NCBI RefSeq assembly: GCF_006345805.1
Contig: NC_043010.1
Coordinates: forward strand, 61,256,001-61,320,000
Direction: 5' to 3'
DNA from: Octopus sinensis
Taxonomy: Eukaryota
Length of the DNA stretch: 64,000 nt
In this document: positions 2,809 through 61,395 of the stretch, piece by piece
How positions within the stretch are numbered: the stretch's first letter is position 1
Layout of the letters: every line of letters begins with the position of its first letter
The notes under the pieces: generated by a model
Told to the model about the DNA's origin: nothing
The model's database searches: none
What the model saw: the letters and a program-made list of their open reading frames with translations, nothing else
Made by a program: the position numbers and the translations under genes

Positions 2809-3200
2809 CAGGAGTGGCTGTGTGGTAAGTAGCTTGCTAACCAACCACATGGTTCCGGGTTCAGTCCCACTGCGTGGCATCTTGGCAAGTGTCTTCTGTT
2901 ATAGCCCCGGGCCGACCAATGCCTTGTGAGGGGATTTGGTAGACGGAAACTGAAAGAAGCCTGTCGTATATATTTATGTATATATATATGTGTGTGTGTC
3001 TGTGTTTGTCCGCCTAGCATTGCTTGACAACCGATGCTAGTGTGTTTACATCCCCGTCACCTACCAGTTCGGCAAAAGAGGCCGATAGAATAAGTACTGG
3101 GCTTACAAAGAATAAGTCCCGGGGTCGATTTGCTCGACTAAAGGCGGTGCTCCAGCTTGGCCGCAGTCAAATGACTGAAGCAAGTAAAAGAGTAAAAGAG
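2809..3200 (+). mobile_element. SINE family A (tRNA-like head, internal (TA/TG)n, (GAGTAAAA)n tail)
   Basis: Near-identical copies at 5041-5465, 25379-25782 and 59711-60102; Pol III-like head GGAGTGGCTGTGTGGTAAG...GGTTCAGTCCC; repetitive tail. Confidence 0.85.
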
Positions 3201-3270
3201 TCAGTCCTCAAATTTACTAAATAAATTTTAGTGAATTTTGATTTGGAAAGTCTACTGCTTCCAGTAAGTT

Positions 3271-3537
3271 CATCATCATTTAGCGTCCGTTTTCCATGCT
3301 AGCATGGGTTGGACGGTTTAACTGGGGTCTGTGAAGCCGGAAGGCTTCATCAGGCCCAGTCAGATTTGGTAGTGTTTCTACGGCTGGATGCCCTTCCTAA
3401 CGCCAACCACTCCGTGAGTGTAGTGGGTGCTTTTTACGTGCCACCTGCACAGGTGCCAGACAGAGCTGGCAAACGGCCACGAACGGATGGTGCTTTTACG
3501 TGCTACTGGCACGGGGGCCAGGCGAGGCTGGGTGGCG
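3271..3537 (-). mobile_element. RTE-LINE 3'-end fragment with (TGA)n tail
   Basis: Same terminal block (CCAACCCATGCTAGCATGGAAAACGGACG-(TGA)n on the minus strand) as the copy joined to an RTE ORF at 15052-16230. Confidence 0.75.
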
Positions 3538-5040: not shown

Positions 5041-5465
5041 TTGACTCTTTACTCTTGTTAATCTTTTACTTGTTTCAGTCATTTGACTGCGGCCATGCTG
5101 GAGCACCGCCTTTAGTCGATCAAATCGACAGCAGGACTTATCCTTTGTAAGCCTAGTACTTATTCTATCGGTCTCTTTTGCCGAACCGCTAAGTTACGGG
5201 GACGTAGACATACCAGCATCAGTTGTCAAGCGATGTTGGAGGGCAAACACAGACACACAAGCATATACACACACGTGCATATATATATATATATATATAC
5301 ATATACACGACGGGCTTCTTTCAGTTTCCGTCTACCAAATCCACCCACAAGGCTTTGGTCAGCCCGAGGCTATAGTAGAAGACACTTGCCCAAGATGCCA
5401 TGCAGTGGGACTGAACCTGGAACCATGTGGTTGGTAAGCAAGCTACTTACCACACAGCCGCTCCT
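5041..5465 (-). mobile_element. SINE family A
   Basis: Reverse complement of the 2809-3200 element. Confidence 0.85.
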
Positions 5466-5791: not shown

Positions 5792-6430
5792 CTGCAGCAG
5801 AAGAGAAATTTTCAAATAGGGATGCAGGCCTCCACAGCAACTGGAAATGAGGAACCAGTAACAGTTAAGAAGAAAATAATCGAAAATGGTTTTTATTGTG
5901 ATGTGTGTGAGAAGGTGTTTTCATCTAGGGCCCATGCGAGGACCCATAAACCGGCGCACTTGTTCCTTCGAAAGTTGAAGTGTAGTCATTGTGCAAAACG
6001 TTTCTATCAAACGCATCACCTGAAAAAGCACGAAGCGACCCATTCGTCTGCCCGTCCATATGCTTGTGAGATTTGTAAGAGAGCCTTCAAGGTGGAGTCG
6101 AATATGAAGCTTCATATGGCTGTACATACGAGGGAGGCCAGCCACGAGTGCCCTGACTGTGGTTTTAAGTTCCATCAAGCTGGAGCTTTGACGCGTCATT
6201 ATAGGAGCATTCACCTACGTCAACAGTTTTACGAATGTAATGTCTGTAAAACGAAGTTCAATCGGAAAGAAACACTTCGTTCCCATTTGGATTCTCATAG
6301 GATAGATAATCCATTTAGCTGCAAGCCGTGTGGCATGTTGTTCCCCGATAACAGTCAGTTGGTGAAACACACGAAAGCCCATCACCTCGTCATCAAAGTT
6401 CCGAAATCATCTCAGTCACAACAAAGCTAG
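5792..6430 (+). CDS. C2H2 zinc-finger protein ZNF-1 (6 fingers), terminal coding exon
   Basis: The ORF 5822-6430 encodes six C-x2-C-x12-H-x3/4-H motifs (FYCDVC, LKCSHC, YACEIC, HECPDC, YECNVC, FSCKPC). A TTGGCTTTCAG acceptor ends at 5791 with the frame open from 5792. AATAAA at 6480-6485. Confidence 0.9.
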   Translation: MQQKRNFQIGMQASTATGNEEPVTVKKKIIENGFYCDVCEKVFSSRAHARTHKPAHLFLRKLKCSHCAKRFYQTHHLKKHEATHSSARPYACEICKRAFKVESNMKLHMAVHTREASHECPDCGFKFHQAGALTRHYRSIHLRQQFYECNVCKTKFNRKETLRSHLDSHRIDNPFSCKPCGMLFPDNSQLVKHTKAHHLVIKVPKSSQSQQS

Positions 6431-15051: not shown

Positions 15052-16230
15052 TAAAATCATCATTTAACATCTGTTTTCCATGCTAGCATAGGTTGGACGA
15101 TTTGACTGAGGTCTGGCAAACCAGACTCCAATCTGATCTGGATGCCCTTCCTAATGCCAACCACTCCGAGAGTGTAATGGGTGCTTTTACGTGCCACCGG
15201 CACGAGGGCCAGTTAGGTGGTACTGGCAACGGCCACGCCCAAATGGTGCTTTTTATGTGCCACCTGCACAGGAGCCAGTCCAGCAGCACTGGCGACGACC
15301 TTGCTCGAATGTTTCACATGCCACTAGCACAAGTGCTAGTAAAGCGATGCCGTAACAATCACACTTGAGTGGTGTGCTTAACGTGCCATCGGCACGAAGG
15401 CCAGCTTGTTATTCTGGCAATGATCTCACTCGTATGGCACTCTTAGCGCTCCACTAGCAACAGATGCCAGTCACCGAACTTGATTTCGACTTCGATTTCA
15501 CTTGCCTCAACTGGTCTTCGCAAGCAGAGTTTAGTGTCCAATGAAGAAAAGGCACGCACAAGTGGACTGGTTACACCCCTAGCATAGGCCACAAGGTTAT
15601 GGTCACACTTGCACTTGCCGAGTCTTCTGCAGCACAGTATATTTCCAGAGGTCCCCTGTCACTAGTCATTGCCTCTGTGAGGCACAACATTCGAAGGTCA
15701 TGCTTCACCACCTCATCCCAGGTCTTCCTCCCTTCCACAGGTTCCCTCAACTGCTAGGGTGTGGAACTTTTTCACACAACAATCTTCATCCATTCTCGCT
15801 ACATGACCATACCAGCGCAGTCGTCTCTCTTGCACACCACAACTGATGCTTCTTAGGTCCAACATTTCTCTCAAGGTACTTACACTCTGCCGAGTATGAG
15901 TACTGACATTACACATCCATCGGAGCATACTGGCTTCATTTCTTGCGAGCTTATGCATATCCTCAGCAGTCACGGCCCATGTTTCACTGCCATGTAGCAT
16001 GGCTGTACATACACATGTATCATACAGTCTGCCTTTTACTCTGAGCGAGAGGCCCTTTGTCACCAGTAGAGGTAGGAGCTCTCTGAACTTAGCCCAGGCT
16101 ATTCTTATTCTAGCAGTTACACTATCAGAGCATCCACCCCTGCTACTGACTTGGCCACCTAGGTAACAGAAGCTATCAACTACTTCTAGTTTTTCTCCCT
16201 GGAATGTGGCGGAAGTTGTTCTTTGGACAT
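15052..16230 (-). mobile_element. 5'-truncated RTE LINE, subfamily 1
   Basis: The minus ORF 16063-15713 (KGRLYDTCVCTAMLHGSETWA...ERRLRWYGHVARM) is the typical post-RT C-terminus of RTE-clade ORF2. It is followed by a ~650-bp 3' UTR and (TGA)n tail; a close sister UTR copy is at 39886-40500. Confidence 0.9.
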
Positions 16231-18985: not shown

Positions 18986-20968
18986 CTAGGTCAACTCTTT
19001 TTGTCGTACAGATGGGATAGGGTTAGGGGGTTTAGGCCACGTAGGGCTCCATCCTGAAGACACTGGGAAACCCCTGGGCCAACTGTAACTGTTGTCCCAG
19101 TGGGATGACATTTGATGGATGTAAGAGGATGACATCTGCATTGGTGTGTTGGAGGTTAAGTGGGACTGAGTCTGCTGATGGGACCCGCTGGATCGCGGAG
19201 AAAGGGATGATGATGGATGGCTGTTGGGGTCCCTGTGGTGCTTGTCCGCATTATTAGAAGAGGCAGATTGATTCGTGGAGTTGGTGTTGCTGCTGCTGCC
19301 TCGATTATGAGATGAATGGGAGTTAGACTTGGAAGGTGGAGTATCGGAGTCATGCTGAGTCAAGGACGTGGCAGAGTAGGTCTTGTCTCCTGGGGTGTTG
19401 CTGCCGCTGCCACCACCACCGCCGCCGCCGCCACCTGCCCCGGCGCCAGGTGAAACAGAAGACCCAGACGGTGGCTGAATGCTACTGGAGGAAGTACCAT
19501 CATAGCTGTAGAGCTTTTCATTATTATTACTGTTGCCAACAGAAGAGACATGACTTCGTTCATGGCTCTTCAAATCTGCTTGGTGAGAGAAAGACTTCCT
19601 ACAAATGGTGCAGTGGAATATGTTCGATGATGACCCTGAAGTGCGGGACACCATTCCGGGGGTGTTCTCCGACATTGAGACTGGTGGAACCACGACCTCT
19701 CCAACGTGAGTCTTCTCATGATTCAGCAATGTAGTTTGGTGTGTGAAAGATTTCTGACATATTGAGCACGTGAAGGGCTTCTCGCCCGTGTGGGTCCGTT
19801 CGTGGTTCTTCAGTGTGGTTTGATGTGCAAATGTCTTCAAGCAGGTTGTGCAATGATAAGGTTTCTCCCCTGTGTGAACACGTTCGTGATTCAACAGAGA
19901 TGTTTGATGGGCAAATGATTTCATGCAGATCGAACATTTGTAAGCCTTTTCAGGTGAATGGCATTGCTCATGGTTTTTCAAGGTGGTTTGATGGGTGAAG
20001 CTTTTCTCGCACTGGCTGCATTTGTACAAACGTTCGCCCGTGTGGATTCGTTCATGAATTGTCAGTGTTGTCTGATGGGAAAAAATTTTGTCACAAACTG
20101 AACACTTATAAGGTTTTTCGCCAGTGTGTACCCGCTGATGGTTAATAAGGGTGGTTTGATGAGCGAACGTCTTCAGACACGTCGGGCAATGATAGGTTTT
20201 CTCCCCGGTGTGAATACGTTGATGGTTGATCAGCGTGGTCTGGTGAGCGAACGCTTTCATACAGATCGAACACTTGAATGGTTTCTCCCCGGTGTGTGTT
20301 CTCGCATGGTTTATAAGCGTAGTCTGATGAGCAAAATTTTTATTGCAGATCGAACACCGATACGGTTTCTCACCAGTATGAATGCGCTGGTGGTTGACCA
20401 GCGTTGTCTGGTGAGCAAACGTCTTGCTGCAGATTGCACAGTTGTAGGGTTTCGCACCAGTATGAACTCGTTCATGGTTTTGTAGAATGGTCTGATGGCT
20501 GAAAGACCTTTCACACATTGAACACTTGAAGGGTTTCTCTCCAGTGTGAACGCGTTCGTGTATCCGCAGATAATCTCGCTGGCTGAATGCCTTTGTACAA
20601 TATTCACAACTGAAGTGGGTCTGACTCAAACCTGCAGCAGACGCACGTTCGTGGTTCGTTAAATTAGCCATTCTTGAAAACCCCTTCCGACAAATATCAC
20701 ATCGATATGGTTTCTTATGGGCCAAACTATGCTGAATGGTCATCTGTCTGTGATGATGATGCTGGTAGGAATTGTTCATAAAACTTATACTGTTGGTAAT
20801 TCCTGTATTGGTTGATGATGTAATCCCTGTATTGGATGATGGCGTACTGGTAGGTGGGGTCTCTGTCTCGGGCTCCGAAGTGGGAGGGTAATTTTTACCA
20901 CCATTGAAATCAAAGGTTCCAAAAAACTGTTTCCCCATTGGGGTGTATACAGACTGTACGGAATACAT
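18986..20968 (-). CDS. C2H2 zinc-finger protein ZNF-2 (660 aa; 12 canonical fingers plus 1 lacking the last His; S/G-rich C-terminus)
   Basis: Uninterrupted ORF with tandem TGEKP-linked fingers. An upstream acceptor TTATTTTAG ends at 21158, and an in-frame stop precedes the ATG. Confidence 0.95.
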   Translation of the reverse strand: MYSVQSVYTPMGKQFFGTFDFNGGKNYPPTSEPETETPPTSTPSSNTGITSSTNTGITNSISFMNNSYQHHHHRQMTIQHSLAHKKPYRCDICRKGFSRMANLTNHERASAAGLSQTHFSCEYCTKAFSQRDYLRIHERVHTGEKPFKCSMCERSFSHQTILQNHERVHTGAKPYNCAICSKTFAHQTTLVNHQRIHTGEKPYRCSICNKNFAHQTTLINHARTHTGEKPFKCSICMKAFAHQTTLINHQRIHTGEKTYHCPTCLKTFAHQTTLINHQRVHTGEKPYKCSVCDKIFSHQTTLTIHERIHTGERLYKCSQCEKSFTHQTTLKNHEQCHSPEKAYKCSICMKSFAHQTSLLNHERVHTGEKPYHCTTCLKTFAHQTTLKNHERTHTGEKPFTCSICQKSFTHQTTLLNHEKTHVGEVVVPPVSMSENTPGMVSRTSGSSSNIFHCTICRKSFSHQADLKSHERSHVSSVGNSNNNEKLYSYDGTSSSSIQPPSGSSVSPGAGAGGGGGGGGGSGSNTPGDKTYSATSLTQHDSDTPPSKSNSHSSHNRGSSSNTNSTNQSASSNNADKHHRDPNSHPSSSLSPRSSGSHQQTQSHLTSNTPMQMSSSYIHQMSSHWDNSYSWPRGFPVSSGWSPTWPKPPNPIPSVRQKELT

Positions 20969-21769: not shown

Positions 21770-22193
21770 GTGCTTACCTTGGATCGTAGGGTGACCTGCT
21801 GTGCTTGAGGAGACCTATTGAGTCAAGTACATCAACATTAAAAAATCAAATGGAAATTGTGGTTGTGATACCTGTGCTGGTGGCACATAAAAAGCACCAT
21901 CTGAACATGGCCGATGCCAGCATTGCCTTGACTGGCATCCATGCTGGTGACACGTAAAAGGCACCAACCGATTGTGGCCGTTTGCCAGCCTCCTCTGGCC
22001 CCTGTGTCAGTGGCACATAGAAAACACCCACTACACTCACAGAGTGGTTGGCGTTAGGAGGGGCATCCAGCTGTAGAAACACTGCCAGATCAGACTGGAG
22101 CCTGGTGCAGCCTCCTGGCTTCCCAGACCCCAGTTGAACCGTCCAACCCATGCTAGCATGGAAAACGGACGTTAAATGATGATGATGATGATG
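21770..22193 (+). mobile_element. RTE-LINE 3'-end fragment with (GAT)n tail
   Basis: GTGCTGGTGGCAC(A/G)TAAAAAGCACC repeats and the shared terminal block ending GACGTTAAATGATGATGATG. Confidence 0.75.
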
Positions 22194-25251: not shown

Positions 25252-25873
25252 TTAACCCTTTCGTTACCAACCCAGCTGAAACCTGCTCTGGCAAATGTCT
25301 TGTTTTCAAAAGTTCTGAATTAAAATCTTCCACCAAACCTTAGTCACAATTTATGTTCCTAACATTAGCTGAATGATACTCTTTACTCTCTTTTACTTGT
25401 TTCAGTCAATTTGACTGCGGCCATGCTGGAGCACCGCCTTTTAGTCGAGCAAATCGACCCCAGGACTTATTCTTTGTAAGCCTAGTACTTATTCTATCGG
25501 TCTCTTTTGCCGAACCACTAAGTGACGGGGACATAAACACACCAGCATCGGTTGTCAAGCAATGCTAGGGGGACAAACACAGACACACAAACAAATATAT
25601 ATATATATATACATATATACGACAGGCTTCTTTCAGTTTCTGTCTACCAAATCCACTCACAAGGCATTGGTCGGCCCGGGGCTATAGCAGAAGACACTTG
25701 CCCAAGATGCCACGCAGTGGGACTGAACCCGGAACCATGTGGTTGGTTAGCAAGCTACTTACCACACAGCCACTCCTGCGCCTAAGTTATTTTATTAAAT
25801 TCTCTGTTATATTTAAAATTAATTGAAAGAAACACAGATCATCTGAACAGAAATATGGTAACGAAAATGTTAG
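25252..25873. mobile_element. TTAA/CCCT-ended MITE with a nested SINE-A (25379-25782, minus strand)
   Basis: Left TTAACCCTTTCGTTACC versus right GGTAACGAAAATGTTAG (14/17 complementary); a complete SINE-A lies inside. Confidence 0.65.
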
Positions 25874-32549: not shown

Positions 32550-32930
32550 TCATCATCATCATCGTTTAACGTCCGCTTCCCATGCTAGCATGGGTTGGAC
32601 AATTTGACTGAGGACTGGTGACCCAGATGGCTGTACCAGGCTCCAATCTTGATCTGGCAGAGTTTCTACAGCTGGATGCCTTTCCTAACGCCAACCACTC
32701 AGAGTGTAGTGGGTGCTTTTATGTGCCACTGGTACGAGGGCCAATCTGGCGGTACTGGGAACAGCCACACTCAAATGGTGCTTTTTATGTGCCATCTGCA
32801 CAGGAGCAAGTCCAGCAGTACTAACATGGACCTTGCTCGAATGTCTTTTCATGTGCCACCAGCACAAGTGCCAATAAGGTGACGCAGGTAATGTTTCACG
32901 TGCCACCAGCACAAGTGCCAGTAAGGCGGA
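32550..32930 (-). mobile_element. RTE subfamily-1 3'-UTR fragment
   Basis: Colinear with 15052-15400 and 39886-40230. Confidence 0.75.
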
Positions 32931-35699: not shown

Positions 35700-36090
35700 T
35701 CATTGCCAGGTCTGCCTGACTGCCTCTCGTGCTGGTGGCACGTAAAAAGTACCAACCAAACATGGCCAATGCCAGCACTCCCCGACAGACTCTTGTGCTG
35801 GTGGCACATAAAAAGCACCATCCGAATGTGGCCGATGCCACTGACTGGCCCCCATGCTGGTGGCACATAAAAAGCATTCTCTGAAGTGCCTGACTGGATC
35901 CTGTGTAGGTGGCCTGTATAAAGCACCTACTACACTCTTGGAGTGCTTGGCATTAGGAAAGGCATCCAGCTGTAGAAACATTGCCAGATCAGATTGGAGC
36001 CCGGTGCAGCCACCTGGCTCTCCAGACGTCAGTCAAACCGTCCAACCTATGCCAGCACGGAAAACAGACATTAAATGATGATGATGATTT
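35700..36090 (+). mobile_element. RTE-LINE 3'-end fragment with tandem GTGCTGGTGGCAC.TAAAAAGCA repeats
   Basis: Three or more motif copies at 35728-35880; terminal block and (GAT)n tail at 36060-36088. Confidence 0.75.
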
Positions 36091-36380
36091 TATATATATA
36101 ACCATCATCATTAGTTGTCCCCTTTTTCATCCTTGCATGCGTTAAATGAAATTAAATGAGGCCTGTTTCCCACAGCCAAGTGCTCATTCTCTCACCTATT
36201 TCCAAGCAAGGTAATATTTCCCGTGGCCAGGCCTGTTCCTCACAAACACTGAAAACAGCAGCAGCTTCGGTGAATCTCTTCTCTACATCACTCTCTGAGT
36301 GTCCATCATTACTGATGTGTTACTGTCCAGGTACAACTGGACGTGCTGTTGTCTCATTACTAGGGTCATATAATCAGATG

Positions 36381-38249: not shown

Positions 38250-39516
38250 AGGTGGAGGATGCTCTGAAAGTATTCTTTTTTAGAATACGAATAGGATGGA
38301 GAAAGTTCAGAGAGCTATTACCTCTGCTGGCAACAAAAGGACTCTTTCACAGAGTGAAGGGTAAATTGTATGATGCTTGTGTACGAATGGTTATATTCCA
38401 TGGCAGCGAGACATGGGCCCTGAATGCAGAGGACAGGCGTGGACTGGAGAGAAATGAAGGCAGTATGCTCCATTGGATGTGCATGTACAACAAAGTGCAA
38501 ACATATTGAGAGAAAAGTCACGCATAAGAGGCACCAAATGCAGCATGCAAGAGAGAGGACTATGATGGTTTGGACATGTGATGTGCATGAATGAGGACAG
38601 CTGCATAAAGAAGTACCAATCACCGAAAGTGGATGGTACCTGTGGAAGATGGAGAGCCAGGAAGACACGGGATGAAATGGTAAGAACTGATCTCAGGGTG
38701 CTGGAACTCACAGAGGAAATGACAATAGACTGAGATGTATGGTGATATGAGGTTCTTGAGAAGACCTGCCCATGTCAGCAAAACTGAGTTCTACAAGTGC
38801 TTGTGTTCCATCCACACATAATAACAAAACTTTTCCCACATCCTACCCCCAACAAACCTAACTCCATCTTTTCTCTTTCTCACATCCCTTCTTTCATGCA
38901 CTGTGCTTACCTCTCATTCCCCAATCCTGTCCTCATGGCCCTGTTCACTGTTTGATTGCTATTTCTTCTTTTACTCAACTATCTCATTTATATTCTGATC
39001 CCCATCCCCCAATGAGTATGCCTGGCACTCTGCTACCATCTCTCTCCTGCTCTTCCCTCTGCCTGGGTAACCATGTCTCTCCGTTACAGCAGCACACCTG
39101 TTTCGGTCTTAATCCCTTATCACTCTCTCTGGCCGGGTAACCATGTATCTCCTCTACAACAAGACACCTGCTTCTGTCTCTCTGGCACAATCCAACCTTT
39201 CATCATCTGACACAAGATCACCTCCTCCAATGCCCCCTCCCTCCTCAAAAGATCTTTGTCTTGCAGGTTATTTGGTAACCCTGCCAGTGCTGGTGCCACA
39301 TAAAAAGCATCCAGCAGTAAAAACCTTGCCAAAACTGACCTTGCTTGTGCTGGTGCCATGTAAAAAGCACTCGGTCCACTCTGCTGGGTGGTTGGTGATA
39401 GGAAGGGCATCCAGCTGTAAAAATCCTGCCTAAACAAACATGGAAGACTGGTGCAGGCTCCTGTCAAACCGTCCAATCCAGGCCAGTATGGGAAGCAGAT
39501 GTTAAACAATGATGAT
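38250..39516 (+). mobile_element. 5'-truncated RTE LINE, subfamily 2
   Basis: ORF remnant RIRIGWRKFRELLPLLATKGLFHRVKGKLYDACVR...HGSETWAL, then GRWRARKT, a pyrimidine-rich UTR and the shared tail ending GTTAAACAATGATGATG. Confidence 0.85.
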
Positions 39517-39885
39517 GTTGATATTCTTCCATCCTTGCATGGGTCGGATGAAATTTGTCAAGGCATATCTTCTATGGCTACATGCTCATTCTGTTACCAA
39601 TTCTCACCAGTTTCTAAGCTAATATCTCCCATGGCCAGACATGTTTTTCACAGAAGACTTTGAACAAACATCATTGCTTGTAAGATGGTGACATTCGCTT
39701 ACATCCACCATGTGATATCAAGACAAAGATACATGCGCAAACACACACATACATATGGGATTCTTTCAGTTTCTGTCTACCAAATTCACTCACAAGGTTT
39801 TGGTTGGCCCAGGGTTATAGTAGAAGACACTTGCCTAAGGTGCCATGCAGTGGGACTGAACCTAAGCTTCTTGACCACACAGTTA

Positions 39886-40500
39886 CATCATCATCATCAT
39901 TTAACATCCGCTTTCCATGCTAGCATGGGTTGGACGATTTGACTGAGGTCTGGCGAACCAGACTCCAATCTGATCTGGCAGAGTTTCTACAGCTGGATGC
40001 CCTTCCTAACGCCAACCACTCCGAGAGTGTAATGGGTGCTTTTACTTGCCATCGGCACGAGGGCCAGTTTGGTGGTACTGGCAACAGCCACGCCCAAATG
40101 GTGCTTTATACGTGCCACCTGCACAGGAGCCAGTCCAGCAGCACTGGCGACGACCTTGCTTGAATATTTCACATGCCACCAGCACAAGTGCTAGTAAGGC
40201 GACGCGGTAACAATCACACTTGAATGGTGTGTTTAACGTGCCATCGGCACGAAGGCGAGCTTGTTGCTCTGGCAACGATCTCACTCGTAGGGTACTCTGA
40301 ACGCTCCACTAGCAACGGATGCCAGTCACCGAATTTGATTTCGACTTCACTTGCCTCAACTGGTCTTCGCAAGCAGAGTTTAGTGTCCAATAAAGAAAAG
40401 GCACGCACAAGTGGACTGGTTACACCCCTAGCATAGGCCACAAGGTTATGGTCACACTTGCGCTTGCCGAGTCTTCTGCAACACAGCATATTTCCAGAGG
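39886..40500 (-). mobile_element. RTE subfamily-1 3' UTR (5'-truncated copy)
   Basis: Colinear and highly similar to 15052-15650. Confidence 0.85.
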
Positions 40501-53030: not shown

Positions 53031-53550
53031 TTAAACCTTCAGCATTTTAAAGTGGCCATATCTAACCTACTTTATGTTGGAACTGGTCAGATCTGGTCTC
53101 TCATACCTATTCTACAATGTCATTCTAAAAATATATAATCACATGACCAAAATTTCAAAGCTATGACATAATGTATAATTAATTCAAAACAATTTGAATA
53201 AATAAGCCAGTGCTGGTGGCACGTAAAAAGCACCATCTGAACGTGGCCATTGTCAGCACCGCCTCGACTGGCTTCTGTGCCGGTGGCACATAAAAAGCAC
53301 CATCCGAACGTGGCCATTGCCAGCCTTTCCTGGCACCTGTGCCGGTGGCATGTAAAAAGCACCCACTACACTCACGGAGTGGTTGGCATTAGGAAGGGCA
53401 TCCAGCTGTAGAAACACTGCCAGATCAGATTGGAGCCTGGTGCAGCCTCCTGGCTTCCCAGACCCCGGTCGAACCATCCAACCCATGCTAGCACGGAAAA
53501 CAGACATTAAACGATGATGATGATGATTTGATAGAGTAATGTTTAGAGTT
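53031..53550 (+). mobile_element. piggyBac-like MITE interrupted by an RTE 3'-end insertion (53208-53527)
   Basis: MITE body up to ...AATAAATAAGC, then the RTE tail element ending (GAT)n, then MITE-end-like TTGATAGAGTAAT. Confidence 0.65.
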
Positions 53551-53836: not shown

Positions 53837-56800
53837 ATGGAGACCCCTATGAGCAATGAAAAACTGATGCATGCTGATTTCTATGGTAAACAGTTTTCAC
53901 CAGCCCCAACTTTGCAAACGCAAAGAATAAGCCACATTTGTGACAAATTGATTCATACTGATATGTACGGGGTCAAAGACTTCCCACAAAGGCATAATCT
54001 TTCCATGCAAAGTATTCCTCACATTCTGGATAAACCTCTCTACCATCCAGAATTCGTGCCAAGGCATCATGGCTTCCAAATGCAGACCATTCCCTCCCAC
54101 ATCCCTGATAAATCGTTCCATCACAGCATGGTTACATATGCGAAAGAGTTCAGTCCAACACAGAACACTCTACCTTCGCCCAAACTGTTGACCCACATGG
54201 TTGACAAGTCCCCTGTTCATTCCACCAGCCCCCTACAGTCTAACAAACAGTTCCTCAGTCCCACACATTCTTCAGTACCACTACAGTCTCCTAAAATGCC
54301 TACAATGATGGACAAGATCTTTCCAGATGGTGGCCTTCTTGACAGTAGTGTGAGTGATGGTAAACAGTATTCTCACCCTCACAGATTGCAGTCGCCTATG
54401 GAGAAGAGTTACCATAGCAACGAGTCACATAGGAACAGCCCGTTGCCATGTGACAAGCAGCTGTCACACCAACTTGACCTGCAGTCTTCATCAAAGCTGA
54501 GCCCAGTGATGGCGAAACAATACTCTGACCCGATGCTTTACCACAAGTCTTTCTTGACGGAGAGTAGCCATCTTTCAGAGGCAAGCCGTAACCAATGCCA
54601 GGAGAACTGCCATGGCCACACTGTTGCCGGGGGTAACAACAGTGGGGGCAGCCATGGGTTACACACTCATAAAACTACTTCCGGTATGTCTGACAAAGCA
54701 TACCACCATCAACAACAACATCATCATCATAGCAGTGGCAGAAGCAGCAGCAGCAGCAGTAGTAGTAACAGTGGTAACACCCCCTCGTATATTCCGTCAG
54801 ATCACACCAACCCCTCTACACCGAAGCCCCCGGACAAGATGTACCCCCAGCACGGATCAGTGAGCATGTCTCCGAAGCTTTACTCTCCGAACCACCACAG
54901 CAATATGCAGCCACAGAAAAGCTACCTTCACAATATCATCACCAGCAGCAGTAGTAGTGGTAGTGGTAGTAGTAGTAGCAATAGTAGTAGTGGTGGTGGT
55001 GGTGGTGGTGGTGGCGGTGGTGGTGGCGATGGTGGTGGTGGTAGGGGTATGAACTGCAGTAATTCCATAACTCCTCCGACCATTACCTCTCCTAGTAGTG
55101 CCAGTGTCCCCAGCAGCAGTCCGGCCCCTTTGAGGACCGACAGCATTGTTGCTAAGCAACCCTACGAAAGCAGCATCCATGATGAACAACAGCAACAACA
55201 ACAACAGCAGCAGAAACATCACAAGCAACATCAGCATAAGCAACACCAACACAAACAACATCGACACAAGCATCACAACAAGCATCATCATCAACAACAA
55301 CAGCCTCAGCTACAACAACAACAACAAATACATGTACAACAGCAACAGCAACAACAGATTCAGGCACAACAACAAATACATGTACAACAGCAACTGCAAC
55401 AACAGCAACAGCTTCAGACGCAGCAACAACTCCAGGTGCAGCAGCTGCAAATGCAACAACAACAACAGCTGCAAGCACAACAAATACAACAACAACAGCA
55501 ACTTCAAGTTCAACAACAACTCCAAACACAACAGCAGCAGCAGCAGCAACAACAACTACAAGCACAGCAACAACAACAGTTGCAGGCTCAGCAGCAGCAA
55601 CAACAATTGCAAGCACAACAACAACAACAGAGGCAGCTGCAAGCGCAGCAACAACAGCTGCAAGATGAACAACATTCACCACAGCAAACACAGAAAGCGC
55701 ATGATCGCCATCAACACAAGCATCATCATCACCATCCACAACAACAACAACAACAGAAATCTCAGCAGGATCTACAAGAACAACAACAAGAACCGCAACC
55801 ACAACAACAACAATACAGCAGTCTACAGAACGAAACCTCAAAATGTTACTCGCAGAACAGCGATTCCCAAGAACAAAGGGAAGACAGCAGCCCTCCAAAA
55901 CAATCTCCCCACTTGCACCACCATCACCACCACCACCATCATCAACAGCACCATCACATTCATCATCACCATCATCATCACCATCTTCAAAACCTATCTG
56001 GGGGCTCCCTCCAGTCGGTAGGAGACACAAACCTAGATCTGAAAGATGTTACCAAAGAAGACCCTTGTGAGAAACCCTATGATTCTTTAACCTGTCAAAT
56101 GACGAACCCCCAGAATTGTTCCGAATCTCTTGAGAAGCTCTACAACATGGATAACGAAGTCAATGAGAAGCCTTCGTTGACGTTACTCGAAGGTACCGAC
56201 CAGATGTTGATGGTAGACGACAAGAAGCCGCTGCAGTCTATGTTGAACAATGAGATGGCTGGTACTGACAGGCCATCTTCATCCTCAGTGAATGCGCAGC
56301 GTTATCACTGTGACTTTTGTGGAAAACAGTTTGCACAAAAGTATGTGCTGCAGATGCACAGACGAACGCATACAGGGGAGAAACCGTTCCAATGCGATTT
56401 CTGCATTCAGCGGTTTGCTCGTAAGGACACGTTACAAATCCATCGAAGAATCCACACCGGTGAGACACCGTTCCAGTGTGACAAGTGCCCTAAACAATTT
56501 GCTCAGGCAGGGAAACTTCAGAAACACAAAAAGCGTTGCCATAACGGCCAGGCCAATTCTGTGACGGGCAACACTCAGAAGTCATTAACGCCTCGGTCAC
56601 AGAATCCAAAGAAAAGAATCTCCGTCACATGTGACATTTGTTTGAAACAGTTTGCTCATCGAGATTACTTAACGATCCATAAAAGGTCACACACTGGAGA
56701 GCGACCGTTTGGGTGTGAATTCTGCCCACAGCGGTTCACTCGCAGGGACATGTTGCAAGTCCACCGTCGGACTCACACTGGAGAGAAGCCTTTTGAGTGT

Positions 56801-57412
56801 CCCATTTGTTTCAAGCGTTTTGCACAGAGAGATAAGCTGCACATACACTCGAGGGTGCATTCAGGGGAGAAACCTTATAAATGTCAGTTGTGTTCGAAAC
56901 AGTTTTCTCAGCGTAACACCCTGGTTGGCCACTTAAGGTCGCACTCGGGAGATCGGCCATATCAGTGTGAAGTATGTTTGCGGAGGTTTGCCCAAAGGGA
57001 TTACTTACGGGTACACACACGATCCCACACTGGGGAGAAACCCTACGGATGTGATTTCTGCATCCAGCGCTTCTCTCGCAGGGACACATTGCAAATTCAC
57101 CGCCGTATTCACACCGGGGAGAAGCCATTCCGTTGTAACTTCTGTGGCAAAGAGTTTGCTCAGACAGACAAGTTGCGACGACACAAACGAACTCATCCCG
57201 AGTTGAAACAAGAGATCAATGCTGGTAACAACAACAACAAAGCCAACAATGGCAACACTGCAGCTGCAACTGGCAACTACGATAGCGCGGCAGCAGCTGC
57301 AGTCGCTGCAATTACAAGTGGCGTAGACAGCGACGGCAGTAAACCTATGTTGGTCCCAGTAAAGACTATTGATGAGTATTTACCTGTAAATAACTATTTG
57401 TGGCTGTTGTAA
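53837..57412 (+). CDS. C2H2 zinc-finger protein ZNF-3 (~1190 aa; 10 fingers; long polyQ/polyH/polyS/polyG region)
   Basis: Single open frame whose first ATG is at 53837 (the ORF track starts at TTG 53795). Ten C2H2 motifs at 56303-57196; Q-rich tract at ~55187-55813. Confidence 0.95.
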   Translation: METPMSNEKLMHADFYGKQFSPAPTLQTQRISHICDKLIHTDMYGVKDFPQRHNLSMQSIPHILDKPLYHPEFVPRHHGFQMQTIPSHIPDKSFHHSMVTYAKEFSPTQNTLPSPKLLTHMVDKSPVHSTSPLQSNKQFLSPTHSSVPLQSPKMPTMMDKIFPDGGLLDSSVSDGKQYSHPHRLQSPMEKSYHSNESHRNSPLPCDKQLSHQLDLQSSSKLSPVMAKQYSDPMLYHKSFLTESSHLSEASRNQCQENCHGHTVAGGNNSGGSHGLHTHKTTSGMSDKAYHHQQQHHHHSSGRSSSSSSSSNSGNTPSYIPSDHTNPSTPKPPDKMYPQHGSVSMSPKLYSPNHHSNMQPQKSYLHNIITSSSSSGSGSSSSNSSSGGGGGGGGGGGGDGGGGRGMNCSNSITPPTITSPSSASVPSSSPAPLRTDSIVAKQPYESSIHDEQQQQQQQQQKHHKQHQHKQHQHKQHRHKHHNKHHHQQQQPQLQQQQQIHVQQQQQQQIQAQQQIHVQQQLQQQQQLQTQQQLQVQQLQMQQQQQLQAQQIQQQQQLQVQQQLQTQQQQQQQQQLQAQQQQQLQAQQQQQQLQAQQQQQRQLQAQQQQLQDEQHSPQQTQKAHDRHQHKHHHHHPQQQQQQKSQQDLQEQQQEPQPQQQQYSSLQNETSKCYSQNSDSQEQREDSSPPKQSPHLHHHHHHHHHQQHHHIHHHHHHHHLQNLSGGSLQSVGDTNLDLKDVTKEDPCEKPYDSLTCQMTNPQNCSESLEKLYNMDNEVNEKPSLTLLEGTDQMLMVDDKKPLQSMLNNEMAGTDRPSSSSVNAQRYHCDFCGKQFAQKYVLQMHRRTHTGEKPFQCDFCIQRFARKDTLQIHRRIHTGETPFQCDKCPKQFAQAGKLQKHKKRCHNGQANSVTGNTQKSLTPRSQNPKKRISVTCDICLKQFAHRDYLTIHKRSHTGERPFGCEFCPQRFTRRDMLQVHRRTHTGEKPFECPICFKRFAQRDKLHIHSRVHSGEKPYKCQLCSKQFSQRNTLVGHLRSHSGDRPYQCEVCLRRFAQRDYLRVHTRSHTGEKPYGCDFCIQRFSRRDTLQIHRRIHTGEKPFRCNFCGKEFAQTDKLRRHKRTHPELKQEINAGNNNNKANNGNTAAATGNYDSAAAAAVAAITSGVDSDGSKPMLVPVKTIDEYLPVNNYLWLL

Positions 57413-58041
57413 GACACCAGCCAGCGCATGGGAACTGCTAACACGCATACAGGACATATATACGTACATATATGTACACACACATACACACCTTGAACGA
57501 CAGTAGAACTGTATACACTTTAATATTTTTCACAAGTGTTTATATAGATAATCTATAAGCAATCCTATGTTTTATTCTCGCCCCCCTCCCTCTCTCTCTC
57601 TCTCTCCTTCCCCTCTCCCCCCTCCCTTCCTTTCTGCCATCAGTGTGTATCAGACATGACATATCTTTGGATAAATATCCTCTCATTTTAGTAATTCCTG
57701 CTTCAAGATGCGGTCTATGGCCAGACTAGTTCCACCTCCACCACCACCGCCACCGCCATTCTTGTAGTCTTCTAGTCAAGGGAAGACAACTCAGATCGAG
57801 TGACCAAAATTTTATTTAAATCTCTGTTTATTTTGTTTGAGATTTGAAATAAGCTAAAAACGGTGGCTGAGCTAGTAATATCGTCATACGCCTTAGCAAT
57901 AACACACATTGCTTTCTATGACATCTTTGTACGCCTGACTAATTCTCAATGCATACTTTATATATATATATATCATGTGTGTATACATACATCTCTATCT
58001 ATCTTTTTACCTACCTGTCTGTCTATCTACCTATGTATGTA

Positions 58042-58174
58042 TATACATAAATATAAGAGAGTAACCACCATGTGGTCTACTCTAGCACTAAAAATAGATC
58101 CGCCAGGTTTCAGCGGATCTATTTTTAGTGCTAGAGTAGACCACATGGTGGTTACTCTCTTATATTTATGTATA
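58042..58174. repeat. Perfect hairpin: 62-bp arms, 9-nt loop (MITE-like, TA-flanked)
   Basis: 58042-58103 is the exact reverse complement of 58113-58174; loop CAGGTTTCA. Confidence 0.95.
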
Positions 58175-58272
58175 AAATGTATCGTAATCCGGTTTTTTTT
58201 ATGCACTAAGCCACTTGGTGTTAAATGGATGTACTATTAAATTAGTATCCAACTTTCTCACCCTCATTAGTT

Positions 58273-58334
58273 GATATATATGTATGTATATATATATATA
58301 TATATATGTATGTATATATATATATATATATATG

Positions 58335-58385
<51 letters not shown>

Positions 58386-58450
58386 ATACACAAACACACA
58401 TGCATACATATATATATACTCTCTGTCTCATACACACACATCTATATAGA
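58273..58450. repeat. (TA)n/(TG)n/(CA)n microsatellite
   Basis: Read directly from the sequence. Confidence 0.9.
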
Positions 58451-59710
58451 TAAATACTTCCAAAGCTGTTTTTATTTTCTCATTTCTACCCATAAATTCT
58501 CCCACTAAAACCTGTCCAATAAGTTCTGGTAATATCAAACAGTTCAATATTCTTCTTATTGATTTTCATTAAACCAAATACCCTACCCCACCCTACCCTA
58601 TTCCACCTACTGCTTCTTTTCCCCTCGTTATAAAATTATCCAATTTCTTTAAACATTAATTACAAAAGTGAAAAAAGATCCACCTGTTCGTTAGAGTTGC
58701 TTATTAGCTTATCTGTTGCTTTCATTGCTGACATCTTGCAACTATGACGTGACCACCACAGAAGAAACCAAGTGGATTGTGCCATGCCAAGTGCATAGAA
58801 TGGTGTTTTTTTTTCCTCCTTTTTTTTTCAACTCTGTCTCTTTCTTTGTTTTCCTTCCCTGCCTATATTTCCCAAAATGAGAGAGATCTTTGAAAATAGG
58901 TTCGTTTTGTCTGTCCGTAAGCAATATGACTCTCTAAAGTTTTAACTGAATTTTTAAAAATTATGTCTTTTGTTTATTTTTTCCAATATTTTGCTCTGGT
59001 GGGAAAAAAATGTCCTAAGTCTTCTTGGATTGTTGAAGACTGTGTTTTGTGTACCATGTGAAAGCTAAGCCATTTTGATGGAATCCGTCTCTTCTCAGAA
59101 TGCTCTCTGTCACCAAAACTCATTGATTATAATGTGCAACTACAGTTGATATGGATATGTCTTGAGTGGAATGGATTTAGCTTTTGAAAATTTGGATATT
59201 TTGCAAGTCAGTTGTTGAGGTAACTATTTTCTTGGTTGACTGTCCATTTTACAGTAATTATTTAGTTGTGAAAAATGGCTGACCTCTATTTTTATCTGGG
59301 ACTATTTGGAGCAAGCAGAGTAATATCTAGTGAACCATTTCCTATTTATTTTTGTTGTAGCAAGAATCCCTTGCTACTCCCCTCCATCCCCATCGTTCTT
59401 TATAAGTTATTATGTCACTCAGTGTTTGTCTACAAAAATCTTTTATATATCAGTAACAGTTAAATTATGCTGCACTGGTGAGGTCCAATAAGAGTGAAAC
59501 ATGTCTGGAGTTATCACTACATTGCCAAAGATTAGACTCACTCCTTATTCCACAACATATGTTTTATTTAAAGTTCACAATTGTGTTCTCTGTCTCTCTT
59601 GACTTAAGCTAATCATTAAAATAATGGCTTTTTTCCCCTCGTTAAGTCTGTAATTTTAATTAATTAACATTTCTTAGCCCACTAATAGTATATTAATAAG
59701 TATATTAGTT

Positions 59711-60102
59711 ACTCTTTTACTTGTTTCAGTCATTTGACTGCGGCTATGCTGGAGCACCGCCTTTAGTTGAGCAAATCGACCCCGGAACTTATTCTTTGTA
59801 AGCCCAGTACTTATTCTATCGGTCTCTTTTGCCGAACCGCTAAGTGACGGGGACGTAAATACATCAGCATCGGTTGTCAAGCAATGCTAGGGGGACAAAC
59901 ACAGACACACACACACATACATATATATATACATATATACGACAGGCTTCTTTCAGTTTCCGTCTACCAAATCCACACACAAGGCTTTGGTCGGCCCGGG
60001 GCTATAGCAGAAGACACTTGCCCAAGATGCCACGCAGTGGGACTGAACCCGGAACCATGTGGTTGGTAAGCAAGCTACTTACCACACAGCCGCTCCTGCG
60101 CC
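59711..60102 (-). mobile_element. SINE family A, intact
   Basis: Near-identical to 25379-25782. Confidence 0.9.
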
Positions 60103-61395
60103 TAGTTCCCAATTTACTATTTATTTTTACATAAGGCTCACATCCCTGAGGATTTACCCCCATTGAAGCTTTGTACATCAGATTTGACCTCTTGACTTTG
60201 ATACCTCCTGATTCTCGTCAGTATAAATTAGAAGATACAACATTGAAAATAAACAAGTTTAGGGCTTAATTGAGAATGTATATATATATATATATATATG
60301 TGTGTGTGCATATTACTTATGTCATTCAATGCAAATAATAATGGTGAGAGTGTTTAGACAGACTTCTTAATGCTTTTACTCCAACATCGTCCACACACAA
60401 ATCGCTCATTGACAAAGTAAAATATGATATTTTAGGATCATCGTTCCTTTACTAGTCCTTTAAATCTGGGTCTATTCCTTCTACTGGTCCCCTACAACTG
60501 AGTCTATCCCACTCCCATGCAATTTCCTGACATCTTTCATCCTTAACACAGAGAGATTCTCCTCTGCTGATGGCTAGCTCTGTCTCCTTGGTTACCATCA
60601 CTAAGTCATACAGCTTTATCAATGAAGATGATTTAACAGATTATTGATATTTCTACAGAGACAAACTGTGTTCTAGAAACACTGTAGCAGAGAACTGAGA
60701 GTGAATGTAAATTATTTCTGTGGATCTGATATAGTAACAAGCCCATAGATATCACAATGATCACACCCAGACCAAATTCTGTTCACACACTTATTATATA
60801 CACACGCATACTTCAAGATCCACATCATGATCAATGCCACAACACCAGAGAACCTTTGTTTATTAATTGTGTGTGTGTTGAATGCTGTATCACCAACGTA
60901 CCCAAGTACGGGTTTTGAAACTTCACCAGAAGTACCTTTGATGTACTCATTATCACATGTGACTTTGATGCCACAGAATGGTGCCTACCTGACATTTCTG
61001 CAATGAAAATGGCACCAAGTTCCATGTAAACTGAAGTCTCGTGATTCAATGTTTAGAATGTGTGTGTAATTTATATCTGCGTGTATATATGTATTTATGT
61101 ATGTAGAAATGGTTGATATGTACATATAATTTAATTTTTAAGTGCATGCTTATACACCCATATATACAAATATGTGTGTGTGTGTTTGCATATGTGTATG
61201 TATATATGTGTGTCTAAAGGAAAGCGTGTTCAAACCCTTGCTTCTTGGCTGAGTTTAGATCCTGAATCTTTTGTTTCATAGAATCTTTTTTGAAGTTTTT
61301 TTAATGCTACACGGGTCAAATGAATATTTGGAGAGAATAATATTGCTTATGTTTTCATATATATATGTGTATATATAAATATAAATATATATGTG

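Follow-up and report, generated by a model that had tools for sequence, protein, structure and literature searches.

The window analysed here is a stretch of 64,000 nucleotides of the Octopus sinensis contig NC_043010.1 (61256001-61320000, plus strand), and it carries three open reading frames for C2H2 zinc-finger proteins, at positions 5822-6430 (plus strand), 18986-20968 (minus strand) and 53837-57412 (plus strand). The presence of the first two explains why an earlier note on this DNA had called the third one ZNF-3. The stop codon of this third frame, at 57410-57412, has the same coordinate as the row NC_043010.1:61313410:61313412:+ in Data S3 of PMC9699675, which identifies the gene as LOC115219437. 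The accessible part of the same table also contains ZNF-like genes further along the contig, at 61425904 and 63449650, and these, together with the three frames in 64 kb, place the window within a cluster of zinc-finger genes.

LOC115219437 has a single coding exon for a protein of 1191 amino acids, which has one exact match in the public assemblies (CM016872.1 of GCA_006345805.1). A glutamine- and histidine-rich tract, at about 54900-56050, extends over several hundred residues of Q, H and QQQL repeats, and produces long spurious reading frames in another frame (55146-56021, plus strand) and on the opposite strand (55152-56030, minus strand). Protein searches with the full frame, the C-terminal 430 residues and the N-terminal 288 residues returned no close octopus orthologue from a database that apparently holds no near relatives; the C-terminal search was dominated by generic C2H2 proteins and the word-based search was swamped by the Q/H tract. 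The nearest relative, a protein of 1060 amino acids (P0001) from Logan transcript contigs of four RNA-seq assemblies (L001-L004), is 66% identical over the fingers and comes from a more distant species, and its 3′-UTR of about 900 nt shows no detectable similarity to the window.

Downstream of the stop codon, 629 nt separate the gene from a palindrome of 133 bp, which spans positions 58042-58174 of the window (NC_043010.1:61314042-61314174). The features of this region are the following:

53837-57412, plus strand: coding sequence of O. sinensis LOC115219437, single exon, 1191 amino acids, with C-terminal C2H2 zinc fingers (Pfam) and a long polyQ/His tract.
57895-57902, plus strand: AGCAATAA, 8-mer site for Ovu-Mir-137 (PMC9699675, Data S3), 483-490 nt past the stop codon and 139 nt before the palindrome.
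58032-58049, no strand: microsatellite-like block TATGTATGTATATACATA, straddling the left boundary of the palindrome; its 8-mers occur 20-60 times in the window.
58042-58103, no strand: left arm of the palindrome, 62 nt, of which the outer ~14 nt (TATACATAAATATA) are microsatellite-like and the inner ~48 nt are unique.
58104-58112, no strand: spacer or loop of 9 nt, CAGGTTTCA.
58113-58174, no strand: right arm, which reads as the exact reverse complement of the left one; unique sequence (AAATGTATCGTAATCCGG) and a run of eight T come after it.
58236-58241, plus strand: ATTAAA, the earliest poly(A) hexamer of canonical type after the stop codon, with 61 nt between it and the palindrome; a candidate poly(A) signal.

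An inverted-repeat search found the two arms to be 100% complementary over 62 nt each, with TA as the outermost bases on both sides (in fact, TATA at the start and TATA at the end). Perfect pairing stops at 62 nt, and what the predicted RNA structure adds beyond that are G-U wobble pairs from the TA/TG-rich flanks. Folded as RNA, the palindrome reaches -112.4 kcal/mol against -34.1 ± 3.5 kcal/mol for its dinucleotide shuffles (z = -22), none of 200 shuffles being as good, and as DNA it reaches -70.3 kcal/mol (z = -26.6). An origin by chance was rejected on the z-score of -22. Open reading frames that cross the palindrome are all spurious, and it has no coding capacity. When the whole window was scanned for perfect palindromes with short loops, this was the sole long one not made of simple repeats; the next-longest have stems of 15-32 nt, all of them TA/TG simple repeats, and the only other palindrome of complex sequence has a stem of 14 nt.

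Whether such a structure belongs to the messenger depends on where the transcript ends. Zolotarov et al. (2022; PMC9699675, Data S3, sheet 'Octopus_sinensis_conserved_8mer') list, in the accessible part of the table, Ovu-Mir-137-v1 with the target AGCAATAA in LOC115219437 and in O. bimaculoides LOC106870050, at alignment columns 531-538, as a conserved 8-mer of the 3′-UTR. This 8-mer occurs only once downstream of the stop codon. A listed site at 490 nt means that these authors counted at least the first 490 nt as 3′-UTR, and that this part could be aligned with O. bimaculoides, whose lineage split from that of O. sinensis about 34 million years ago (PMC10700109). There is no AATAAA or ATTAAA between the stop codon and the palindrome, and a scan for 13 poly(A) hexamer variants gave no match in 57815-58046, hence none between the miR-137 site and the palindrome. 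A U/GU-rich tract of (TA/TATG)n starts about 30 nt after the ATTAAA at 58236, and the mRNA carrying the miR-137 site would thus most probably end near 58255-58270. The microRNA site upstream and the lack of a hexamer in between indicate that the palindrome probably lies inside the mRNA of LOC115219437; at the latest, it would lie in the immediate 3′ flank. The predicted 3′-UTR is about 850 nt long, against an octopus median of 350-380 nt (PMC9699675). The accessible parts of that supplement list no rows with coordinates 613137xx-613142xx, and a literature search by gene id found no mention of LOC115219437 or LOC106870050.

The geometry given by the earlier note (a 62-bp stem with no mismatch, a loop of 9 nt and TA at the outer ends) stands after the repeat search, as does its distance of 630 bp from the stop codon, for which we count 629 nt. 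The hexamer scan also agrees with its observation that no AATAAA or ATTAAA precedes the hairpin and that the first ATTAAA is at 58236, and its probable placement in the 3′-UTR is strengthened by the conserved miR-137 site upstream with no hexamer in between. Downstream of the candidate signal, the (TA)n/(TATG)n microsatellite (58274-58381 / 58265-58420) gives mir-297/mir-466-like matches in Rfam of 55 bits against a threshold of 90, which is an effect of low complexity.

The two boundaries of the palindrome differ in character. On the left, apart from the microsatellite-like block that straddles it, a low-complexity alignment between 57959-58056 and a TA-rich array at 1212-1394 (~72% identity) runs across the boundary. 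That array belongs to a longer one of about 680 bp (1099-1782) with many internal inverted repeats. On the right, the flank is unique and does not mirror the left flank. The motif ATGTAT occurs on both sides of the palindrome, but offset, which fits the microsatellite context, and inspection by eye of shifted boundaries found no target-site duplication of 3, 4 or 8 bp adjoining the palindrome. The T8 run (58190-58197) begins 16 nt past the palindrome and resembles the end of a bacterial intrinsic terminator or a Pol III stop, a resemblance that we regard as coincidental. A bacterial-style terminator or Pol III unit made of the hairpin and this run was rejected, since the DNA is eukaryotic and no Pol III promoter boxes could be seen.

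No second copy of either arm exists in the 64-kb window, either with up to 3 mismatches or by blastn-short, and the arms match each other only. Further afield, an exact 24-mer of the arm had no match in metagenome and viral contigs, collections that hold no octopus DNA, and seven variants of the reading frames through or beside the palindrome had no exact match in a collection of 15 billion proteins that is essentially blind to octopus DNA. The 46-residue read-through translation, compared by phmmer with 1.84 billion representatives, gave only nine weak matches (30-45% identity), which we read as chance; the two that were inspected (P0160 and P0162) are translated tandem repeats. Searches of the full text of 8 million papers with 12-13-mers of the arms returned unrelated matches only, read as chance or as primer sequences.

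A self-comparison of the window revealed two families of interspersed repeats. One is SINE-like, of about 395 bp, with four copies of 88-95% identity at 59708-60104, 25388-25784, 2809-3195 (minus strand) and 5057-5465, the last two of which make up an inverted pair with about 1.9 kb between its members, shortly before the first zinc-finger frame; ARAGORN found no tRNA-like genes or SINE heads in the window. The other, of about 320 bp and 70-87% identity, has at least eight copies in the window (53207-53527, 21871-22192, 32550-32865, 35795-36094, 3270-3528, 15056-15283, 39886-40138 and 39287-39522), the first of which ends about 300 nt upstream of the start codon of LOC115219437.

How could a perfect inverted repeat of this size arise? 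Our preferred reading, which we hold tentatively and from the sequence, is that the palindrome is real, very young and single-copy, and that it would be an inverted duplication made by template switching in the distal 3′-UTR or 3′ flank, most likely neutral or slightly deleterious. During replication, the nascent strand would have jumped to another template and made a reverse-complement copy of about 62 nt of neighbouring sequence. The left arm and the loop would then represent the older state and the right arm the added copy, and a single event would suffice to produce a perfect hairpin. Mutations of this class are known to make perfect hairpins in single events, with examples of 28 and up to 83 bases (PMC10710096; also PMC5453318), and thousands of new template-switch stems of 30-55 nt have been found in primates (PMC10710096).

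The structure found at this locus is the one expected of such an event: a perfect reverse-complement copy adjoins its putative template, with a short spacer of 9 nt and sharp boundaries. Since the left boundary falls inside the microsatellite block, the left arm has a native appearance over its outer ~14 nt and the right arm that of a mirror copy which happened to end there, and a native left arm would be expected to continue the flanking TATG/TATA block across the boundary, as is observed. The uniqueness of the arms within the window and the right flank, which is unique and does not mirror the left one, also favour this mechanism. Against this reading, 62 nt ranks among the longer of the described events, the TA at both ends is also what a Tc1/mariner-type insertion would leave, and the native look of the left boundary, found as it is in low-complexity sequence, argues only weakly. 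The palindrome shares with the hairpins born by template switching (Löytynoja and Goldman 2017, PMC5453318; Monttinen et al. 2023, PMC10710096) the adjacent perfect reverse-complement repeat with a short spacer, the putative origin in one event, the predicted location in transcribed non-coding sequence, a size within 28 to 83 bases, and the single copy, which here means single within the window. It differs from them in that its 62 nt exceed the stems of 30-55 nt catalogued as miRNA-like. Our literature search found no description of a template-switch event in cephalopods.

The second candidate is a transposable element, and here the analysis bears on the earlier note, which had seen in the hairpin a miniature inverted-repeat transposable element (MITE). 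Under this explanation, which we rate only slightly below the first, a near-fully palindromic Tc1/mariner MITE (Stowaway/MADE1-like) would have been recently inserted at a TA in the 3′-UTR; with about the same reserve, it would have terminal inverted repeats of 60-62 nt and a core of 9 nt, and would have been moved by a transposase acting in trans. The sequence does have what such an element should have: a length of 133 bp, below the 800 bp used to delimit MITEs, perfect inverted repeats over its full length, no coding capacity, an AT-rich target region and a TA at each end, as a Tc1/mariner-type insertion would leave. Elements of the TcMar-Tc1/Mariner type are present in octopus genomes, where they have undergone lineage-specific expansions (PMC8967140), and there is a precedent in the human MADE1, a palindromic MITE of 80 bp with TA duplications that is the source of the mir-548 genes (PMC1784062).

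The ends of the palindrome are less favourable to a MITE. Because TA is its own complement, a terminal TA is indistinguishable from the end of the palindrome, and the two TAs may simply be its outermost base pairs; moreover, 16-21% of the dinucleotides around the palindrome are TA. The termini (TACATAAATATAAG...) are of low complexity and merge into the flanking microsatellite. Tc1/mariner elements typically end in CAGT-, CCAGGT- or TTAGGT-type sequences, and these termini are unlike them. Moreover, neither a related autonomous element nor a second copy, even a diverged one, was seen in the 64-kb window. The missing copy weighs little, because 64 kb would as a rule contain no copy of a family that numbers fewer than about 40,000 in the whole genome, and the protein, reading-frame, metagenome and viral collections, which gave no copy either, are essentially blind to octopus DNA. 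With MADE1 and the Stowaway-like MITEs (the source of hsa-mir-548, PMC1784062), the palindrome shares a short length (80-133 bp), a structure that is nearly all inverted repeat with a tiny spacer, TA ends, AT-richness and a position in a non-coding part of a gene. On the other hand, MADE1 is present in thousands of copies and derives from a known parent, Hsmar1, whereas neither a second copy nor a parent was found for the palindrome in the window; the arms are perfect rather than decayed, and the termini are unlike known mariner/Tc1 ends.

The label of MITE is not established: the size, the inverted repeats and the TA ends fit it, the absence of a second copy in the window (a weak negative) and the left end inside a microsatellite speak against it, and template switching explains the anatomy equally well. 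The evidence that parts the two mechanisms is slight. The related claim that the hairpin is the only object resembling a transposable element in some 6 kb is roughly right, as interspersed repeats end at 53533 and resume at 59708 in the self-BLAST of the window, with internal coding repeats and low-complexity sequence in between.

A third explanation is technical. Inverted-repeat chimeras are a known artefact of long reads, and a read that was chimeric or folded back on itself, or a polishing error at this site, could have created in a PacBio-based assembly a palindrome that is absent from the animal. The O. sinensis assembly (GCA_006345805.1) was built from PacBio and Hi-C data (Li et al. 2020, as cited in PMC10700109), and a de Bruijn assembly with k=31, such as Logan, would be unable to span a perfect inverted repeat of 62 nt. 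We judge such an artefact unlikely. A missed adapter should leave its remnant at the centre of an inversion on the scale of a read, yet there is no trace of the SMRTbell adapter at the loop or in its surroundings (best local score of 8 against a control mean of 9.2), and the inversion covers 62 nt only, after which the right flank is unique, with no kilobase-long mirroring of the left flank. The case is isolated in 64 kb, so it is not part of a systematic pattern, and perfect arms after consensus and polishing would suggest consistent read support.

Whatever produced it, the palindrome would be recent. There are no substitutions between the arms in 124 paired positions, and at rates of 5e-9 to 1e-9 per site per year (assumed, and not measured in octopus) the expected wait to the first substitution is 1.6-8 million years. 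The identity of the arms thus indicates that the palindrome is probably a few million years old at most, an estimate made from this one sequence. Moreover, a long perfect palindrome with a short spacer is easily lost by deletion. An alternative to youth is that conversion keeps the arms identical. O. sinensis and O. vulgaris split 2.5 million years ago (PMC10700109), and the age of the palindrome is probably comparable with that of this split.

If the palindrome is transcribed, its most immediate property would be the double helix that it forms. A perfect A-form duplex of 62 bp is an excellent substrate for ADAR, as textbooks describe. In octopus, A-to-I editing occurs mostly in introns and 3′-UTRs, and hairpins are enriched there (PMC9699675). 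From this concentration of editing at 3′-UTR hairpins, passive hyper-editing by ADAR would most likely be the main molecular consequence of transcription. This agrees with the preferred reading of a template-switch duplication, in which the hairpin would most likely be a neutral or slightly deleterious by-product and the 62-bp duplex, if transcribed, a passive substrate for ADAR hyper-editing.

A different proposal, and one that could hold for either origin, is that the hairpin is an element of the mRNA maintained by selection, a dsRNA switch working through ADAR hyper-editing and nuclear retention, Staufen binding, or cleavage by Drosha or Dicer. It is very improbable in our judgement. Its setting is suggestive, with a probable location in the 3′-UTR between a conserved miR-137 site (139 nt upstream) and the ATTAAA (61 nt downstream); editing in octopus is enriched at 3′-UTR hairpins, coleoids have many novel miRNAs (PMC9699675), and both template switches and MITEs have seeded miRNA genes (PMC10710096, PMC1784062). 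Nevertheless, perfect arms are a mark of youth and not of conservation, and editing in octopus is largely decoupled from miRNA function (PMC9699675). We see no sign in the sequence of a selected switch.

Inverted pairs of Alu elements are hyper-edited by ADAR, retained in the nucleus and bound by Staufen. The pairs found in human 3′-UTRs have in common with the octopus hairpin a long intramolecular dsRNA in a 3′-UTR that ADAR and Staufen can recognise, a property that is predicted for the hairpin. They differ in that the Alu duplexes are imperfect, of about 300 bp and made of two SINE insertions, whereas the palindrome is one perfect stem of 62 bp with a loop of 9 nt.

Processing into small RNAs fares no better. 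The best cmscan scores of the palindrome are to two perfectly palindromic families of Rfam, mir-3145 (46.3 bits against a gathering threshold of 98) and mir-6130 (39.2 against 117), both less than half of the threshold and both generic hairpin matches; that to mir-6130 scores alike on both strands. Known pri-miRNA hairpins, such as these two families, are of comparable overall length, but a curated family at its gathering score or an imperfect stem of about 35 bp would be expected of a miRNA precursor, and the stem found here has roughly double the length of a Drosha substrate and is free of mismatches and bulges. The arm sequences were not found in the accessible supplementary tables of the octopus miRNA study (PMC9699675), which is a weak negative. 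The hairpin is thus not supported, as a sequence, as a canonical miRNA. In a survey of 32 molluscs, including O. bimaculoides, there was neither a siRNA-type Dicer or Argonaute nor a signal of endo-siRNAs (PMC12479628), and for lack of such a dedicated pathway, phased siRNAs made by Dicer from the hairpin would be unlikely. The earlier proposal of a Drosha or Dicer product finds little support in these comparisons, and its dsRNA switch is best regarded as speculation.

One further scenario would place the hairpin at the very beginning of a functional history. A template switch or a MITE would have put a perfect dsRNA of 62 bp beside a conserved miR-137 site in the 3′-UTR of a polyQ zinc-finger gene of neural type, a reading to which we give very little weight. 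To an equally small degree, we can envisage a newborn hairpin specific to O. sinensis, at 'age zero' and absent from O. vulgaris, that would already be hyper-edited by ADAR or cleaved into a new small RNA and would alter the fate of the mRNA.

The palindrome is one locus, and each of the two mechanisms considered is already well known from other organisms; the palindrome is probably a member either of the hairpins born by template switching or of the MADE1-like palindromic MITEs. If it is real and transcribed, it would be a clean natural case of one mutational step placing a long perfect dsRNA in a 3′-UTR, in a group of animals with heavy A-to-I editing and a fast gain of miRNAs. On the same conditions, a comparison of O. 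sinensis with O. vulgaris would display the states 'before' and 'after' such a step.
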